A stretch of 63,848 nt of DNA, filler included, from Salisapilia sapeloensis CBS 127946 (taxonomy: Eukaryota; Protista; Oomycota): the NCBI GenBank assembly GCA_023334545.1. It is 10 parts of 10 records of this genome, joined end to end, with 100 filler letters (N's around TTAATTAATTAA, not from the genome) between each part and the next. Parts side by side here need not be neighbours in the genome. Positions count along the whole stretch, not along the records: positions 27,901 to 49,315 come from JAADVB010000285.1; 9 more parts are not named here. One strand, 5' to 3'. The position numbers and the translations under genes are program-made. Positions 28,081-36,997 of this stretch are shown here, piece by piece. Under the pieces are notes generated by a model. It saw only the letters and a list, made by a program, of their open reading frames with translations. It searched no databases and was not told the DNA's origin. Every line of letters starts with the position of its first letter. The stretch's first letter is position 1.

Positions 28081-28386
28081 CTTGTCAAACGATCCCAAAC
28101 CAAACGAGTACGAGGATAAAAACTATGATACTGAACTTTGCTAGCAGACATCCTGTGCCTCTGCCTTCACAGCGACTACATCACCTATATGAAGCTTCTA
28201 GGGCATTATAGTTAAGAACGATACGATGCCTTCTTCACACCACTAATAATACAGGAGTAACAAAATGAACAAGACAAATTGATTTGGGAAGTCCATGGGG
28301 AAGCATCATGTTTATTCCTTCGCATTGTTGGTGTCCACATCCTCGAACGTGACTCCAGATTGTGTAAAGCAGCTTTTTCAAGCAAC

Positions 28387-29308
28387 TTACACCTTGAAGC
28401 CACGGCTCTTTCGGCGACCACGGGCACGCTCGAACTTGCGGCCGTTGGCACGAACGTACGGCTTGACGTGGTCGTGCGTGTGGACGGACTCGAGCGTGGA
28501 GGCGTGACCGAAGTGGCGGTACACCTCACGAGCCTTACGCGGTCCACGGAGGAGGACCGTGTTCTGACCCTTGGGGGCACGGAGAGCCAACTGGTCGAAG
28601 CTCAGGCATTCACCGCCAGCAGCCGTGATACGAGCACGGGCGGACTCGGTGAAGTGGAGAGCGGCGACACGGAGGTTCGGGACGTCGAAGAGACGAATGT
28701 CGTCCGTGACGGTGCCGACAAGGACAGCCGTCTTTTCCTCCTTGTTGCGCATGAAGCGAGCAATGCGGGCAATGGACATCGGAGCCTGGTTGGTGCGGCT
28801 CTGATACAGACGCTTCAGCACAATCGAGTTGAACTTGGCGTCCGTACGGCGCGAGAGGAAGCGGTAGAGCTATAGATAGGATAAGAATAAGTGCTATAGT
28901 GTTGTATGAAGAAAAGAGAGACGTACGCGGACGAGGAGGTCCAAGTAGACGTTGTCCGACTTGGGTCCCCTGCGGACCTTCCTCGGGTTACCATTTCCGT
29001 TATGCGGATTATCAATTCCCTAAGGGAGTCAAATGGAAAAACCGAATAGAAGTTAAGCAGTTGCGATCAAAAGATAATATTCCATCATGGGCTCAAACGG
29101 CCCGCCTCTTTACGAGGGGAATGGTCCATACGACCAGCAAGCGGGCGAAAGCCCACGAGCTAGTCCAGGAACTAAAAACAGCCAAAGGCAGGAAGCATAA
29201 AGTATGCTTGATGCTTGTCACGTTCGTTGTTGGTCCTCATGCTGATGCCCACGTGGGTGGGCGAGCCATTAGGAGCCCATAATGGACGAAATAAGAGGCA
29301 CGCACCAT
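28387..29308 (-). CDS. RPL18: 60S ribosomal protein eL18; exons 29308-29306 (ATG only), 29019-28927, 28869-28387; 192 aa
   Basis: M|GID...[13 protein letters not shown]|[30 protein letters not shown]...[13 protein letters not shown]...[25 protein letters not shown], with canonical GT-AG introns of 286 and 57 nt. Confidence 0.97.
29081..29286 (-). ncRNA. Candidate structured RNA element in RPL18 intron 1 (class unknown)
   Basis: A 25-bp closing stem (29286-29260 with 29106-29081; 14+11 bp, three G-U pairs valid only on the sense strand) encloses several hairpins, e.g. AAGCAUA-CUU-UAUGCUU, GUGGGC-UUUC-GCCCGC and UGGUC-GUAUG-GACCA. Confidence 0.7.
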
Positions 29309-29387
29309 GCTTTCCCGGTGTCGAAGAGAAGACTGACCTTGGATGGGCTGGTGGCGCTGCTTTCAGACGTCGGAGAGCCAACGGTAT

Positions 29388-29401
29388 TTTTGTCCAATCA
29401 G
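29388..29401 (-). promoter_or_regulatory. CCAAT-box-like motif in the divergent RPL18/sulfotransferase promoter
   Basis: The minus strand reads CTGATTGGACAAAA, about 80 nt upstream of the RPL18 ATG. Confidence 0.5.
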
Positions 29402-29578
29402 CGATTTTAGTAGTGAAAATCTTCGAGTAAGTACGATCTTACTGAACACGAATTTGCAATTCTAGCAAAGACACGCATTGGCCGTGTTATTGGTCGATAA
29501 GCTACCTCCTACTTGTCTGTTTACAAGCAAAAGTAGTGGTAATCTGGCATTTTCTATCTTAGGGCATTGGCGGACAAG

Positions 29579-31226
29579 ATGACACCTTCTTTAGGGAATG
29601 ATTACATTTCATTGGCGTATGTGTATTGGATGGAGTATGCTCTAAACTTTATTCTGACTTGAATGACTTTGTAGACAGAAGCAAGTACCATTGGCAGAGT
29701 TGGATGCATCCATTACGAGTCAATATGATATTGCAGTGGAGCGACAGCAGAATATTGATATCAGTGGGTTGAAGGAACGGATTGAGAACGAAGGACCGAC
29801 GATGTGGGATCCGGCGTATCAGAAGGGGAATGTACCAATTCGTCGTGCTGGACACGACAAGTGGGGCATTGGTAAAGCAGTCTTTATCTTCTCCGATGAC
29901 TATATCGACAACGTCTACATTTTCCCTTGGTTCCACACGTGGAAGAAAGAGCTCGAGGCTATTTTCGACCAAGTTCAGATCCCGGTCGATCGTGTTATTC
30001 GCTGTATACTAGCGAAGATGCCTCCGGACTCAGATATTCCTACTCATCACGACACAGGTGCTTGGGTGAGTAAATCCCACCGCATGCATATTCCGATTCG
30101 CACCGATCCGTCGATTGAATTTAAAGTCGGTGTGAACGAAGAAAAGATGAAGCCATTTGAGTTTAAGGAGGGAAATCTATACGAATTGAACAACGCTTGC
30201 AAGCACAGCGTCCATAACTACTGGGATAAGGACCGCGTGCACCTCATTTTCGACTTTGTCGAAGAAGACTTTCCGCTCAATAAAGTGGAGCTCACACCTG
30301 ACATGCAAGTGCACCAAACAAGACGCACGTTGGATCTATCCACCGACTATGGTAAGCGCATTCCTCCATCTTTTCTCCTCATCGGGGCGCAGAAAGCAGG
30401 AACGACATCCTTGTATGATTATATTACACAGCACGACATCGTTGCCCCTGCTAAACGCAAAGAGACGCACTACTTTGACTGGCGATGGAACTTTTCGTTA
30501 CCGTCTAGTGATACGGAGGAAGGAGCAAAAGCTCATCTGGACTACTACCACAACTTTTTTGAAAAAGAGATTTTATACAAGTGTCCTTCCGTACTATCGG
30601 GAGAAGCTACACCAAGCTACTTGCTCGGTGGATCTGTCGTGATTCAACGTGTCAAGAATGTGTTGACGCACAAACCCAAAATTCTGGTCATCTTGCGCAA
30701 CCCGGTCGATCGTGCGTACTCGCACTATTCCATGACAGCAGACGAGAAAGGAACGCCAGCCCAGCTAAAAAACCGTGGACATGATCAGCTTAACGGACGG
30801 TCCTTTGAACAGGTTGTGGACGAGGAAATCGATATGTTGAAGAAGAAGGGAACCCATCCAGACATGGCTTTTGATAATTTCGACTCTAAGATTCTGGAGG
30901 AAGCCGCAAAGCTAAAGCATGGTGGCCATTCCTTTGTAACGCGAGGGTTATATGCGCTCCAATTAGCTGGCTGGATCCAGGCGTTTGGAAAAGAGAATGT
31001 TATGGTGCTTTCGATGGACGACATTAAGGGAGACAGTCTCCAGCGTACGATGAATGACGTATTCGTCTTCCTTGGAATCCCTTCGCAACGTATATCGGAT
31101 GGCTCGGCGAAAAACACGAGACAGTACGAGCCAGTGCATGATGCTGTGAGACAAAAGCTACGTGCATTCTACGCCCCGTACAACGAAAAACTGTACGAAC
31201 TTGTCGGTAGAAACTTTAATTGGTAA
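29579..31226 (+). CDS. Fusion of an Asp/Asn beta-hydroxylase-like 2OG-Fe(II) dioxygenase with a PAPS-dependent sulfotransferase (HS3ST-like fold); intron 29617-29674
   Basis: N-domain has HxD (PTHHDTG), distal His (KHSVHN) and Arg (DRVHLIFDF). C-domain has 5'-PSB (IGAQKAGTTSL), KETHYFD and 3'-PB (LRNPVDRAYS). No signal peptide or TM anchor is visible. Confidence 0.85.
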
Positions 31227-31294: not shown

Positions 31295-34200
31295 TTACGC
31301 CTGTAAATTTTGCCGCTGCTTTCGTCGAGTAGACTGCATATGCCGCTGGAACTTGCACGTATATGTAGCTTCCTCAACATCCTGTTGACTTTTACTATCA
31401 GAGGTACAGCTACCCGCCCTTGCTTCATTTTTGATGATGTACTTATCATCGTTACAAGTCATCAAGACCCCTGCAGCGCGCATCGCTGCTACTTTGTCCG
31501 TCTTGCTCGTTGATTGTGATATCTGAGTAGAGAGAACATGGACTGGATGCTTTGTTGCTGTCAATACATCTTCATATGCACCACGAGCGAGTCCAATGGT
31601 TTTTACCTGTCTCCGTTCGACAAGCGGCATTCCTGGGGCTGTCGAGAGTGTCGTCTTGACAATATACACTGTCCAGGAAGGTTGCATGAACGTCTGCAAC
31701 ACACATGCCAAAGCCGGTTTCGTTTGGAACCTGTTCTCTGTTCCATTTTGGGTTTTACTTGAAGAGAGTCGATGACTTTGACTTGTAAAGCTACCCGGAG
31801 CGTTCACTGCATTTGTCCCGTTGCAAGTTTGACCAGCTTGGATTTTAAAAGACCCTACGCTTTCAACAAATCGATTCGACAAACTGGAGGAGTCTTGTAG
31901 CGAGTTTCCGTCCAAATCTGAAGCGCTTGGTAGATGCAAGGACACTTTTTCACATTGGTAGCGTACTTCATGCAACTCTTCATCAGTTTGATCGAGAATC
32001 GAAAGGAGGCTTGGTACAAGTAGACTATCAGCATCAGTTTCAATTTGACTTCCTTCACCCACGAGTCGATGTAGTGTCGAAGCAGAGATTCGCTGGAGCA
32101 GAGTCGCCTCTGATATGTTCGAATGGACTTGCCCATATTGATACATTTTCAACAGCATATCGATCGCACCCAAGTCAATGAGCTCTTGCTTGAAGTATGG
32201 AGCTGTAGATAAATTATCCAGTGCGGCACTGGTATCTAATAATGCTCCGAGACAATCTTCCAAGTTACTAGTCGGTATATTACCGCTACAAATACTGAAA
32301 ACCTCACTTCGGAGATGGCGGACACCGTACAACAAATGCTTTTGGGTCAGTCGACTAATCCTTTCATTAATGCTGTGTACGCCACTATCAAAGTTGTTTT
32401 TCGATGACAATTCTTGTATTGCATTTTTGCTCGGTATTTGGCCGCTTTGTGATTCTGGCGATCCATAAGATGATATCTTATGCGAGGACAGATAAGTTGT
32501 TGTTGTTGAATCTTTCTCACCAGAGGCGCTTTCGTATTCATCGTATAGAACCAATTGCTCTGTAACCGCCAGGGACAGGTTTCGAACGAGCTCCGCGCCA
32601 CATCTTCTTAGCGAAAAAAAACTCTTGCCGTAATCTGAAGTGCAAATTGACATGACAATATCGACAATCTGACTTTCTACCAAAGTCTTGTGAATATGCT
32701 GGTACATGGACATTTGGACTAAGACCTGTACTACTTTTACCGCTAACAATGCGCTTTTCGGATGTTTGCTTCGCATGTGGCCACATAGGCTAACTAGTCG
32801 TTGCTTTAACAACGAATCAGCACACTTGTACTTCTTTGCAAGTACATTGACAACATCTGCAATATAGATGCATGCCTTCTCATCGTTTCCAATGGAACGG
32901 TGCTCGACTAGAACGAGTAATCTCAAGACTATGTTCTCGTTCACTATCATCTCGGCGAGGGTGTCGTCGATAGCCAAGTTTTCGAGACATCGAAAGATTG
33001 CCAAATATGTCTCTTTTCCTAGGCCAGTATTCTGTGTGCCTTCTGACTCAGATACAAGTGAATCAAATAGTTCAGGTACTGCTTGCGGTATTTTGAATTC
33101 AGCAAATAAATGATGCGAGTCATAGATCCTGGAGCAGTTCGCTAGTGCTTGGACCGCAAAGTGTCTTACCACAGCATTGGCATCTTCCGTTAAAGTCGAC
33201 AGTAGTTGCAATGTCTTCCTTTCACACAGTATTTCCACCCATGGCTGCCGACAGCTAAGATTTTGCAATGCAATCGCGGCTGCCGCACGAGTTTCCGATT
33301 CATCGTCAACATACATTCGAATAGCATCCGTAACGAACGTATTCATGAGTTCCTTGTGGTTTTCCTCGTATGCTGACAAATTGCAAATAATCCCAAGGGC
33401 ATAGCGACGACTAGCAAACGAAATTTCCATGTCAAAATCATGGTTAAAATCGTTGAGTTCAGATGAATATGTATCCAGTAAAAGTGAAGTAGACTCACTC
33501 GTTGAGCCTTCTTGGCTCCTAGAATTTGAGGATACGGCTGACAATAAGTATGTAATAATTCCTTTGCCAAGTAGATGGGACTGATAGTTTCGATCACAGG
33601 AAACGTTGAATAGTGCCTGCAATGCTACATGAAATATCTCTTCTGCTGACTTATGAAGAAGACAAGCTTGAGTGCTGGTATGGCACCGACATACACTTGT
33701 ATCAACCCCAGCTTCCGAGTTGCCTTTCACACTAGTCTTGGAATGCGCACTTGCTGATCTCTCTGTAGCGACTTCGGACCGAAGTGCCTTTAGTTGGGAT
33801 ATTTTCATTAACGCGTAGAGAACACCATCCTTGACAGCACTTGCTCGTGTCTCTTGGTTGCATAATAAATTAGAAAACGTTTTCGCGTGAATTTGCTTTG
33901 CTTGTATCGAGTTTGCACGTAGCAGTGCTATGACAACGAAGTCTTTGAGTTCATTTGATGTCCATATACATTTCTCACTCGCTGCATTACAAGCAGCAAT
34001 TGCAGCGTACTGCTGACACTCGACTTGACCGTTTCTACCAAGCCGGTTCAACGCTTTGGCGAGCTGACCGCAATTGACGAGCTCTTTTCGCCCAAGTGGT
34101 GTGAGGCTAATCATCGCAAATGCGGATGAGCAAGCGAGCAAAGATTGTGGTTCCTCGCTGGAATTGCAGCAATTGATCAATGCCTCTATAATACGCTTGT

Positions 34201-36811
34201 CAACGTTACCTGCCGCACAGATATGGAAGAGAGTAGCAGCACAGTATGCTTTTGTTACTTGGCAAAAAGTAATACACGGTGCGGATAAGTTAATGGGTCT
34301 TTCACAGACAGCTATCAGCGCCCTCTCTACTTGCTCCGAGTAAAATGGGTTTTGATGACCTCGACGTTGTGAGTAAGATCTAGATAATGTGAACAGGATA
34401 GCAGCAGCGAGGTAGTTTAGCTTGTGTTGGTGCGCTATTGCCGCTTGATCCTTGATAGAGTCATCGTCACCGCTCAGGCAATCCACCACAAGGTCTACCA
34501 ACATACTGATGTTACGTGGGTCCATAATCTCTGAAGCAACTGTGAGCAGTGCTAAGAGAAAAAGCTCCTGGTCATCATCAAAAGCGATATTGAGAAGCTC
34601 AAACTCTCTCTTTTCCTTCGTCCATTGCTCTAACTTTTGATCGTGTTCTCGAAAGAAATAGACACCGTGAACTAGACTTCGCACAACCATGTCACCATAA
34701 ACTATCGTCTGCAATCGACTCGTAAGAAGTAAATTGCACAATAAGTGTACATGCATATACTGCAAGCTCCGAGTACTGCGTCTGTCGTCGGCTGCTAGTG
34801 CTAAGACACTCCCATCTAGCGTTTGTGCAAGTACAGTATGATATACACTACGCTGCGCTAGGTTCGAAATCGTAACAACGGCGTCTTCCCTAATATCATC
34901 CGTCACATCGTCTAAATTGAGCACTGTCCTATCGACTATGGCAGTCAATTTATTCTCTTCGTGATCTGACCTGCAAGTTGCAATGGTGTAGAGCAATGGC
35001 AATACTGCTGGAAACTCCATCATGTAGACGGCACAGTTCTCATCGAAGCTGATGTTGCAGATTGTACGCATTACGTTTCGCAGCAAGCATAGTCGATCGT
35101 GACCCTCTGATAGAATCTGTTGTCTGTCTAAGAGAAGCATCCTTGCCGCCAGACGAACAACATCTTGCTGAAAAATATGCTTTCGTGGCTCAGTATTACT
35201 AGATAAGTTAGCCAATGCACGAGCGCATGGAATGACGACATGCTGCAAACGAATTTTAGCTATTGATCCGTATGTATTACTCCCTAGATCATGGAGGGCT
35301 CTCAAGAGGAGCATGGAAAAGATTCGAGCACCACAATGTGCTAGATTGACATGAAATTCGAAGTGCGCAGATATGTTTGCAAAAGCCTTTGCAATTCGAC
35401 TCAGCACTGTCAATAACGCCGAACTATTAGCTCCTAAAGTTGGACGTACAATCAGGCCCAACTTGATACTTAAATCGCGGTCAATAACACTGATACTTTC
35501 ATCTAGCATCTTGCACGCGTCAGTCGTAAGCGTTAATAGGATATCAGCTGCACCACCTCGTGCGGCACTAGCGCAGCATTCTCGTTTAATAGATAGGTTA
35601 TAAATTGCTTCGACTGCAAACTCGATATGAGAAATATCTGCTAGGTGTCCGATTACTGTCATGATACCAGGCTGATACTTCCCTGTCTGTGGCTCGCCGA
35701 CATAAACTCTTTCCGGAAACGAAATATCGTAATAAATGAGGTTTATCACACACTTGACAGCTAGCATTTGAAGTTCCCTGTTCGATAAGGAGAGCATGGC
35801 CAGCAGTTCGAAAACAACTCTCGCGTTCTCCAAGGCCGGTGCAAGGCATTCATCGAAAGAAAGTCTACACAGCGCAGTTGCACATATCACTTTTACTTCT
35901 ATGTCTTGTGCCCAACATAGCTCTAATAATGCAAGCAATCCATTTTGTTTCATGAAAGCACTTCGTAAGGCTGCTGTGGTTGTTAAGTTAGAGATTGCTG
36001 CAGCACAATATCTGAGCAATGGAGCATTTTCAACGTCCGCCATATCAGCAATTTGAGAAATCGCGCCGCCTTGTATCACTTTTAATTCGTGTCCTTCGAG
36101 ACAAGATAGTTTGTACAGTGACTTTGCACAGTTTAATCGAGTGCAAAGGTTCTTTGGCATCTTTGCATCCTGTCCATATTCGCTTGTTTGCAAAGAAGTT
36201 GTGTTATTACCTGATTGAAAATTGCTCAGGACGGTACTAAGTGGTGTTTTTAAGTCACCTCGAATGCTGTTCATTCGCTTTAACGTAGCTGACGACGGTT
36301 TCTGCAGAATTGAAGCGCTGCGTATTCTGTCCGCTGTGATAATACTCTTTTTGCGACTAGCACTAGACTCTGCTGATATCGGACGATCCGGTGTAGATGT
36401 CTGATTACAAACTTGACTACTCTCGACTTCCTTGGGAGCAACTGCTTCATTGTCAATTGAAAGGTTGGCGATGGGGACTTTCATGTGCTCCGATGAGAAC
36501 TCGGCCGATGCAGCCATGTACTTGTTCGACACTCGAACGAGACCAAGGTTGTCGGCAGCCTTTACGGCCGTCGCAAGAGATCGGAGGCGTGCTGCCGTAG
36601 GGGATGGCACATAGTTCTCATCGACGGACGCAACTCGAGACCGGCGAGAAAATAGGCTGGGACCATCCTTGTGCACGGATTTCCGACTGGAGACTTGCGA
36701 CGACGTGGCTCGTGTAACTCGACGATCGAAGATGAGTTTCGGACGAGACATTCTCCGTCGCTCTAGCTTGTCGCAGTCCAGCTTCATCCGAGATATAGCG
36801 TGATCGTCCAT
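31295..36811 (-). CDS. Very large armadillo/HEAT-repeat protein (~1840 aa, apparently intronless)
   Basis: Many ARM-like repeats (LRYCAAAISNL, CATALCRLS, CARALANLSSN, YALGIICNLS, AAIALQNLSC). Likely start MDDHAIS at 36811 inside the 1873-aa ORF. Confidence 0.8.
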   Translation of the reverse strand: MDDHAISRMKLDCDKLERRRMSRPKLIFDRRVTRATSSQVSSRKSVHKDGPSLFSRRSRVASVDENYVPSPTAARLRSLATAVKAADNLGLVRVSNKYMAASAEFSSEHMKVPIANLSIDNEAVAPKEVESSQVCNQTSTPDRPISAESSASRKKSIITADRIRSASILQKPSSATLKRMNSIRGDLKTPLSTVLSNFQSGNNTTSLQTSEYGQDAKMPKNLCTRLNCAKSLYKLSCLEGHELKVIQGGAISQIADMADVENAPLLRYCAAAISNLTTTAALRSAFMKQNGLLALLELCWAQDIEVKVICATALCRLSFDECLAPALENARVVFELLAMLSLSNRELQMLAVKCVINLIYYDISFPERVYVGEPQTGKYQPGIMTVIGHLADISHIEFAVEAIYNLSIKRECCASAARGGAADILLTLTTDACKMLDESISVIDRDLSIKLGLIVRPTLGANSSALLTVLSRIAKAFANISAHFEFHVNLAHCGARIFSMLLLRALHDLGSNTYGSIAKIRLQHVVIPCARALANLSSNTEPRKHIFQQDVVRLAARMLLLDRQQILSEGHDRLCLLRNVMRTICNISFDENCAVYMMEFPAVLPLLYTIATCRSDHEENKLTAIVDRTVLNLDDVTDDIREDAVVTISNLAQRSVYHTVLAQTLDGSVLALAADDRRSTRSLQYMHVHLLCNLLLTSRLQTIVYGDMVVRSLVHGVYFFREHDQKLEQWTKEKREFELLNIAFDDDQELFLLALLTVASEIMDPRNISMLVDLVVDCLSGDDDSIKDQAAIAHQHKLNYLAAAILFTLSRSYSQRRGHQNPFYSEQVERALIAVCERPINLSAPCITFCQVTKAYCAATLFHICAAGNVDKRIIEALINCCNSSEEPQSLLACSSAFAMISLTPLGRKELVNCGQLAKALNRLGRNGQVECQQYAAIAACNAASEKCIWTSNELKDFVVIALLRANSIQAKQIHAKTFSNLLCNQETRASAVKDGVLYALMKISQLKALRSEVATERSASAHSKTSVKGNSEAGVDTSVCRCHTSTQACLLHKSAEEIFHVALQALFNVSCDRNYQSHLLGKGIITYLLSAVSSNSRSQEGSTSESTSLLLDTYSSELNDFNHDFDMEISFASRRYALGIICNLSAYEENHKELMNTFVTDAIRMYVDDESETRAAAAIALQNLSCRQPWVEILCERKTLQLLSTLTEDANAVVRHFAVQALANCSRIYDSHHLFAEFKIPQAVPELFDSLVSESEGTQNTGLGKETYLAIFRCLENLAIDDTLAEMIVNENIVLRLLVLVEHRSIGNDEKACIYIADVVNVLAKKYKCADSLLKQRLVSLCGHMRSKHPKSALLAVKVVQVLVQMSMYQHIHKTLVESQIVDIVMSICTSDYGKSFFSLRRCGAELVRNLSLAVTEQLVLYDEYESASGEKDSTTTTYLSSHKISSYGSPESQSGQIPSKNAIQELSSKNNFDSGVHSINERISRLTQKHLLYGVRHLRSEVFSICSGNIPTSNLEDCLGALLDTSAALDNLSTAPYFKQELIDLGAIDMLLKMYQYGQVHSNISEATLLQRISASTLHRLVGEGSQIETDADSLLVPSLLSILDQTDEELHEVRYQCEKVSLHLPSASDLDGNSLQDSSSLSNRFVESVGSFKIQAGQTCNGTNAVNAPGSFTSQSHRLSSSKTQNGTENRFQTKPALACVLQTFMQPSWTVYIVKTTLSTAPGMPLVERRQVKTIGLARGAYEDVLTATKHPVHVLSTQISQSTSKTDKVAAMRAAGVLMTCNDDKYIIKNEARAGSCTSDSKSQQDVEEATYTCKFQRHMQSTRRKQRQNLQA

Positions 36812-36997
36812 GGTGATAAAGCAAAACAGGTATCTATGTCTATAGGATGATACAGGATAAAAATAGGTGATCTGAATATTGAAGTAGATGTTGGTCAACA
36901 TATTGCTAGGCTGCAACGGGACTATATACCGTCAATAATCTTGTCAAGAGCAGTAGGATGGAGGAAGTAGGCAAAAGTAGTTGTATGCAGAATAGAT

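Follow-up and report, generated by a model that had tools for sequence, protein, structure and literature searches.

A candidate zipper stem in the oversized first intron of an oomycete eL18 gene

Why should an organism whose other introns are short keep a 286-nucleotide (nt) intron in a ribosomal protein gene, immediately behind its start codon, and why should that intron be spanned by a long RNA helix? These questions are raised by the eL18 (RPL18) gene of the oomycete Salisapilia sapeloensis CBS 127946 (GenBank assembly GCA_023334545.1). The window that we analyzed is a stretch of 63,848 nt, in which 10 parts of 10 records of this genome are joined end to end with filler between them. The gene lies on the minus strand of one part, a 21-kb piece of record JAADVB010000285.1 (positions 27,901 to 49,315). 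A first-pass annotation of this DNA had proposed that the helix belongs to an autoregulatory splicing element that senses eL18 or to a new intronic noncoding RNA (ncRNA). We favor a different reading, to which we assign a probability of roughly 55%: the long stem may be a zipper stem, that is, a structural splicing aid for an oversized first intron. A helix that starts 20 nt after the splice donor and ends about 25 nt before a branch-like motif carries the signature of a zipper stem, and this is a simpler explanation than those previously offered.

Intron 1 occupies positions 29020 to 29305 (minus strand, as are all features of the gene; GUGCGU...UUAG, phase 0), and its length is indeed unusual when set against the RNA-confirmed introns of 57 and 58 nt nearby. 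A 5′ linker of 19 nt (29287 to 29305) follows the donor, with the first stem pair at intron nt 20. The 5′ stem arm (29260 to 29286; UCCAUUAUGGGCUC-CU-AAUGGCUCGCC), which was found as part of an inverted repeat and is paired with high confidence over 29263 to 29286, joins the 3′ stem arm (29081 to 29106; GGCGGGCCGUU-U-GAGCCCAUGAUGGA) in 14 + 11 = 25 base pairs (bp). The helix is broken by a CU bulge and a U bulge (three bulged nt) and contains three G-U pairs (U25-G220, U38-G208, and U42-G204 in intron numbering), just as first described. Its outer 22 pairs have predicted probabilities of 0.83 to 1.00; the inner three reach only 0.07 to 0.14, because local hairpins compete with them. Beyond the 3′ arm, a 3′ linker of 27 nt (29054 to 29080) leads to a putative branch adenosine at 29053, at a distance of 33 nt from the 3′ splice site. 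This adenosine is assigned from the motif CUUAAC (29052 to 29057), which precedes a pyrimidine-rich tract. The stem ends 23 nt from CUUAAC and 27 nt from its second A, in agreement with the spacing that had been noted from the outset. An alternative branch motif, UUGAC, is present at 29032 to 29028.

The interior of the stem (29107 to 29259, 153 nt) is looped out in both the minimum free energy (MFE) and the centroid structures and holds small hairpins. Three of these are AAGCAUA-CUU-UAUGCUU (29209 to 29193), GUGGGC-UUUC-GCCCGC (outer pairs 29165 to 29131), and UGGUC-GUAUG-GACCA (29136 to 29122). Two more overlap the arms: GCCCAC/GUGGGC (29262 to 29247) has its first three bases inside the 5′ arm, and CCUC-GUAAA-GAGG (29117 to 29105) has its last two inside the 3′ arm. 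The interior hairpins may be filler or may have a second function. Note that the hairpin at 29247 to 29262 holds a perfect DNA palindrome, CCCACGTGGG, with the core CACGTG, in a promoter-proximal intron.

The structure of intron 1 is real and improbable by chance. Folded whole, the sense strand reaches −101.4 kcal/mol (z = −5.43) and the antisense strand −92.1 kcal/mol (z = −3.16); none of 200 shuffles folded as well on either strand. The duplex energy between the two halves of the intron was −83.4, compared with −57.6 ± 5.8 in shuffles, and none of 2000 shuffles reached it. The stem itself ranges from −36 to −45 kcal/mol for 22 to 25 bp, and the interior alone is moderately structured (fold z = −3.15 sense and −2.2 antisense). 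Structure is more stable on the pre-mRNA strand than on its complement, with the isolated arms at −45.2 kcal/mol sense and −33.4 kcal/mol antisense. This part of the earlier claim of strand specificity stands. The argument from wobble pairs is weaker: three G-U pairs and no A-C mismatch have odds of 1 in 8 under neutral decay of a palindrome, and strand specificity is therefore only suggestive on that count. The homologous intron found in RNA run X6, from a related strain or species (organism B), carries 10 substitutions relative to the window, keeps all 22 outer pairs, and folds with z = −4.7.

Does the stem lie where a zipper stem should lie? We used the definition of Rangan et al. 2025 (PMC12350175), which requires at least 6 bp, no more than five bulged nt, and high helix confidence, together with limits on the linkers. 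The window stem falls within every geometric rule. With the motif-predicted branch point, the linkers of 19 nt (from the donor) and 27 nt (to the A of CUUAAC) sum to 46 nt; with a branch point fixed at 24 nt before the 3′ splice site, the distance to the branch becomes 36 nt and the total linker 55 nt, still within the limits. The helix has 22 to 25 bp and three bulged nt, and 22 of its pairs have computed probabilities of 0.83 to 1.00. No zipper-type stem as stable as this one appeared in 200 or 120 shuffles, nor in 24 native control windows.

For comparison with relatives, we used eL18 loci from Pythium oligandrum, P. insidiosum, Globisporangium splendens, Lagenidium giganteum, Aphanomyces invadans, A. 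astaci, and Albugo candida, plus five loci from Logan assemblies. An intron directly after the start codon (ATG|GT...AG|GG) is present in all 12 of these loci. It is long in 11 (180 to 592 nt), measuring 180 nt in A. astaci, 203 nt in A. invadans, 298 nt in L001, 356 nt in L003, 359 nt in L002, 434 nt in L. giganteum, 440 nt in P. oligandrum, 459 nt in L004, 507 nt in both G. splendens and P. insidiosum, and 592 nt in L022; that of Albugo candida is 59 nt. Given this spread of lengths, the oversized intron is a lineage-wide trait and not a peculiarity of the window.

Position and length are shared, and sequence is not. Searches of the window intron against nine orthologous introns with blastn gave chance-level matches only (best E = 0.016 over 26 nt), and an all-against-all comparison showed mutual similarity only among L001 to L003. 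The orthologous introns could not be aligned well enough to test for covariation. Significant global fold z-scores were found only in the window (−4.9 in a rerun with 60 shuffles) and in L004 (−4.4). Relatives thus offered no common sequence and a single ortholog with a significantly stable overall fold. With no common sequence and few stable global folds, a conserved embedded RNA or protein-binding element is unsupported.

What does recur is the stem. When the zipper rules were applied to the MFE folds of the 12 long eL18 first introns (the window included), with branch points assigned by an automatic rule, 10 of the 12 showed a zipper stem of 10 to 24 bp (−13 to −37 kcal/mol), representing 7 of 9 lineage groups. 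Such stems occurred in 3 to 39% of dinucleotide shuffles and in 17.4% of 288 native windows of the same length from the same loci. A binomial estimate for 7 of 9 groups at a rate of 0.174 is approximately 1 × 10−4. The stem of P. insidiosum (24 bp, −36.6 kcal/mol) is as strong as that of the window, and pair probabilities were 0.87 to 0.98 in seven of the eight zipper stems examined. Furthermore, the structural distance from donor to branch was below the shuffle median in all nine introns tested. Because same-position stems recur in orthologous oomycete introns, selection on the fold of the pre-mRNA is plausible. The distance measure, a donor-to-branch graph distance on MFE folds, was replaced by the explicit zipper rule, as random sequences already give approximately 20 to 30 steps.

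One pair of orthologs illustrates how these stems may change. The Pythium-like introns of L001 and L002 are approximately 75% identical, and a homologous 5′ segment (31-43 in L001 and 29-41 in L002) forms the zipper stem with different, adjacent 3′ segments (233-244 and 289-300, respectively). We considered whether the changes between the two could be compensatory and rejected this: on our reading of the sequences, the 3′ strands are not homologous positions, so that the pattern looks like stem turnover and not site-by-site covariation.

How might the stem act? Once the 3′ arm has been transcribed, it would pair with the 5′ arm and loop out approximately 155 to 160 nt of intron 1. The path from donor to branch would then shorten from approximately 250 nt to 46 nt, close to the spacing usual for a spliceosome accustomed to introns of 50 to 60 nt, such as the ordinary 57- and 58-nt introns here. 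Closeness of donor and branch point would favor pairing of U1 and U2 across the intron, and efficient splicing of a highly expressed eL18 gene would follow. This model supposes that the stem forms in vivo, that CUUAAC serves as the branch site, and that the helix promotes splicing.

To our knowledge, zipper stems have been characterized almost only in budding yeast. The window stem would be a very strong example from a stramenopile, a new eukaryotic lineage for a kind of element known from yeast. Our computational evidence suggests that at least seven oomycete lineages keep a stem at a position suited to the spliceosome despite complete turnover of the sequence. Should this be correct, bridging of donor and branch point by structure could be a general solution for long introns in eukaryotes with short ones, and the conserved long intron after the eL18 ATG would deserve attention as a possible site of regulation in ribosomal protein genes.

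The closest parallels are the zipper stems of Saccharomyces cerevisiae, with RPS17B (RP51B) as the prototype and the transcriptome-wide definition cited above (PMC12350175; see also Rogic et al. 2008, PMC2536676); among Saccharomyces, the stems recur while the sequences diverge. Like these, the window stem is a long-range helix that runs from just after the 5′ splice site to just before the branch point; like these, too, it occupies a long intron in a ribosomal protein gene, and the introns of its host are otherwise short. It obeys the same positional rules, and it recurs without conservation of sequence. Unlike the yeast stems, it belongs to a stramenopile and not a fungus, it is far stronger (22 to 25 bp, −36 to −45 kcal/mol), its intron directly follows the start codon, and it is a computational prediction. 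A second parallel is yeast RPL7B, which reportedly has a zipper in the first intron of a ribosomal protein gene that a protein-stabilized fold could oppose (Granas et al. 2025, PMC12311795). In the oomycete intron, no conserved alternative structure was identified.

The RNA evidence bears on whether this is a spliced intron at all. Exon 1 (29306 to 29334) is 29 nt long and consists of a 26-nt 5′ untranslated region and the ATG (29308 to 29306). RNA contigs from three runs of organism A all stop at 29334, which is probably the transcription start of eL18. Exon 2 (28927 to 29019) supplies 31 codons (GIDNPHNG...LLVR), and exon 3 (28387 to 28869, from the list of open reading frames, stop codon included) is separated from it by the ordinary short intron 2 (28870 to 28926, 57 nt). 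In RNA contigs from four runs, intron 2 is spliced out (joint 28869|28927), as is the 58-nt intron of the divergent neighboring gene. Intron 1 must be spliced directly after the ATG because the conserved N-terminus MGID requires it. Just before exon 2 there is an in-frame TAG, and reading from the ATG without splicing gives a dead-end frame of 23 codons. The product of exon 3 matches Pfam PF17135 and is 78 to 83% identical to the nearest named oomycete eL18 proteins in a protein search. The best identity in a scan of JGI metagenomes for eL18 relatives was 79%, and an exact look-up of the 144–amino acid (aa) open reading frame of exon 3 gave no match. We also observed that exon 2 of the window departs strongly from the near-invariant oomycete N-terminus GIDLIAGGKVVGKKNRTAPKSEN..., with the remaining protein being approximately 80% identical.

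Run X6 is the one run in which intron and exons were assembled separately. Its exon contigs have a depth of 1905, and a separate contig over 29020 to 29313 has a depth of 19, that is, the intron is present at approximately 1% of the exons. Intron 1 is therefore removed from approximately 99% of molecules in X6, which looks like an ordinary spliced intron rather than an accumulating RNA. Sequence words of intron 1 were present in all five listed RNA runs of organism A and in only 1 of 13 from organism B; they were found only in organism A and X6, being absent from the runs of organisms C, D, and E. In organism A, RNA that contains intron 1 and has already lost intron 2 was assembled. We considered these read-through contigs as proof of retention and rejected them as such: with a 29-nt exon 1, the spliced path would be a dead end shorter than the assumed assembler word length (31), and dead ends of this kind are pruned during assembly. 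Three details of X6 deserve mention. The low-depth contig starts exactly at 29020, the last nt of the intron, and its other end, 29313, lies 5 nt before the ATG; Illumina adapter sequence follows directly after 29313; and the exon contig reaches only to 29011, which leaves 8 nt up to the edge of exon 2. The ends of the intron contig may be an assembly artifact or a hint of a discrete RNA end.

Several observations weigh against a zipper function, and we gather them here. All of the structures are thermodynamic predictions, and the branch point is a motif prediction. Two orthologs, G. splendens (L006) and L022, have no stem that fits the rules; G. splendens does have a perfect long-range stem of 15 bp, with linkers of approximately 100 nt in total, just over the limit. 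The distance statistic taken by itself is weak, as long RNAs bring their ends close anyway (0.13 for the window). A 25-bp stem of −45 kcal/mol is far stronger than is needed to bring the two sites together. Nor are all yeast zipper stems enhancers: variants of the RPL28 zipper lowered intron retention. The substitutions in organism B preserve the structure no better than random placement does (0.18), and one of them replaces G-C by A-C in one of the inner pairs of low probability; organism B is the only close relative, and its 10 substitutions give this pattern test no statistical power. Lastly, the organism A contigs run through intron 1, and real retention is conceivable.

The alternative that survives best, although we consider it unlikely, is a neutral foldback: a 206-nt inverted-repeat element, either similar to a miniature inverted-repeat transposable element (MITE) or a local palindromic duplication, inserted into a former intron of approximately 80 nt and tolerated without selection. 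Its own terminal repeats would zip it out of the way and leave 19 + 61 nt outside. The arithmetic is attractive, since removal of 29081 to 29286 leaves an 80-nt intron of near-normal size. The arms are terminal inverted repeats of 26 to 27 nt, albeit imperfect. Significant structure on the antisense strand (z = −3.2) is what an inverted repeat at the DNA level predicts, several interior hairpins are DNA palindromes (for example, CCCACGUGGG), and the substitution pattern in organism B is compatible with neutrality (0.18). Against this, the arms show no target-site duplication, and their flanks (...UUAUUUCG and AUAUUAUC...) hold no matching duplication. No second copy of the arm exists in the 21-kb piece, even with three mismatches allowed, so that the multicopy MITE that the first-pass annotation had named as a danger did not turn up there; nor does the piece hold any comparable foldback. 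Words of the intron are also absent from the runs of organisms C, D, and E. Of the 12 other oomycetes, 11 have a long intron at the orthologous position, which means that the length is no recent accident here; equivalent stems recur in unrelated sequences; and all three wobble positions favor the sense strand.

Autoregulation by eL18 is a somewhat poorer candidate, and we regard it as doubtful. Excess free eL18 might block splicing by binding to one of the interior hairpins or to a fold that competes with the zipper, and the unspliced RNA would meet a stop after 23 codons. Such control could be layered over the zipper function, yeast RPL7B being an example. There is precedent from the same protein family: the introns of yeast RPL18A and RPL18B carry the "Hooks structure" (Hooks 2016, PMC4937481; Granas 2026, PMC13232506), and Rpl18 represses RPL18B approximately threefold in a feedback that needs this conserved intron structure (PMC13232506). 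The zipper-stem enhancer of RPL7B, with its mutually exclusive regulatory structure, is another reported precedent (PMC12311795). Autoregulation would also fit an interior more structured than chance (z = −3.15), a stem stronger than simple bridging needs, the organism A RNA that contains intron 1 with intron 2 already removed and the intron words in all five listed runs of that organism, and the retention of a long intron after the ATG across oomycetes.

The yeast parallel nevertheless breaks down in its details. The yeast element is conserved in sequence among yeasts, whereas the oomycete introns have no element of sequence or shape in common; only the position of the zipper recurs. The intron in X6 reaches just ~1% of exon depth. 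The yeast RPL18 intron also sits at a different position in its gene than oomycete eL18 intron 1. Furthermore, the RPL18B element lies in the middle of its intron and is explicitly not a zipper (PMC13232506). Nothing that we found is specific to an eL18 sensor, and the original proposal is not supported in the form in which it was made. A combined version, in which the zipper and the structured interior together would make an eL18-responsive splicing switch that diverts the transcript into the 23-codon dead-end frame, strikes us as just as doubtful, or slightly more so. In it, free eL18 would prevent excision of the intron by attaching to the looped-out domain or by stabilizing a rival fold. 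If it were true, a stramenopile would have arrived independently at autoregulation of a ribosomal protein through the structure of an intron, as in yeast RPL18B and RPL7B, and the reason that oomycetes retain so long an intron at precisely this position could lie there.

We hold it highly improbable that the excised intron yields a stable hosted ncRNA, whether a small nucleolar RNA (snoRNA) or an unclassified one, for which the long stem would serve in processing or protection. The idea draws on the architecture, as an interior of several hairpins that is closed by a long stem looks like the precursor of a processed RNA. It also draws on Phytophthora, where introns of ribosomal protein genes are often next to the ATG (in P. 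infestans), and SnoGPS predicts H/ACA guides in approximately half of them (Poidevin et al. 2015, PMC4696810). Like those introns, the window intron belongs to an oomycete ribosomal protein gene and lies only a few nt from its start codon, but it differs in having no H/ACA or C/D layout and no Rfam match. A C/D snoRNA should have a C box (RUGAUGA) near the 5′ end, a D box (CUGA) near the 3′ end, and a terminal stem; the sense strand contains no CUGA, and no C/D candidate turned up on either strand of any of 13 introns in a relaxed scan. An H/ACA snoRNA should consist of a hairpin, an H box (ANANNA), a second hairpin, and ACA 3 nt from the 3′ end; the sense strand has one ANANNA and two ACA (nt 76 and 88), both upstream of it and thus in the wrong order. 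Rfam gave no match at E ≤ 10 over 28300 to 29500, none at E ≤ 1 in eight ortholog loci, and nothing at the gathering score over the whole piece. The first-pass view that no known snoRNA or riboswitch is present was thus borne out. Its suggestion of a stable new ncRNA fared worse, given the missing box motifs, the lack of sequence conservation between species, an intron depth in X6 of approximately 1% of the mRNA, and the presence of the intron in only 1 of 13 RNA runs of organism B. A duplex of 22 to 25 bp is long enough for Dicer-type enzymes. That this duplex is an RNase III or Dicer-like target, which would clear pre-mRNA and lariats or make small RNAs, is the least credible reading of all: the yeast RPL18A intron bears an Rnt1p cleavage stem-loop (cited in PMC13232506), but the present duplex is interrupted after 14 bp, and the orthologous stems, mostly of 10 to 17 bp, are too short for dicing.

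Beyond the intron, the comparison of loci has consequences for annotation, because three deposited eL18 models start unlike the conserved ATG|GT...AG|GG structure of all loci. The models of Albugo candida (204 aa; L009, 1501 to 1662), Aphanomyces invadans (205 aa; L007, 1441 to 1646), and A. astaci (188 aa; L021, 1501 to 1683) have deviant N-termini. Use of ATG|GT...AG|GG in the DNA of these three loci would yield the canonical start, MGID or MGKD.

A near-identical motif, CAAGTTTCAATTTTA(A/G)G, lies approximately 10 to 25 nt upstream of the eL18 ATG in L001 (approximately 2500 to 2529), L002, L004 (approximately 855 to 885), L006, L008, and L022. These loci are Pythium-like or belong to Globisporangium or Lagenidium. 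The window lacks the motif, and so do P. oligandrum, P. insidiosum, and Aphanomyces. The motif is probably an initiator or core-promoter element.

The eL18 gene is arranged head-to-head with a gene (29473 to 31226, plus strand) whose product matches the Asp/Arg hydroxylase and sulfotransferase families. Their apparent transcript starts in the window are approximately 139 nt apart (29334 to 29473). The pair is kept in Pythium, Globisporangium, and Lagenidium (L001 to L003, L005, L006, L008, L020, and L022), whereas Aphanomyces and Albugo lack it. A single uninterrupted open reading frame of 1873 aa (31295 to 36916, minus strand) is found downstream of the sulfotransferase-like gene.

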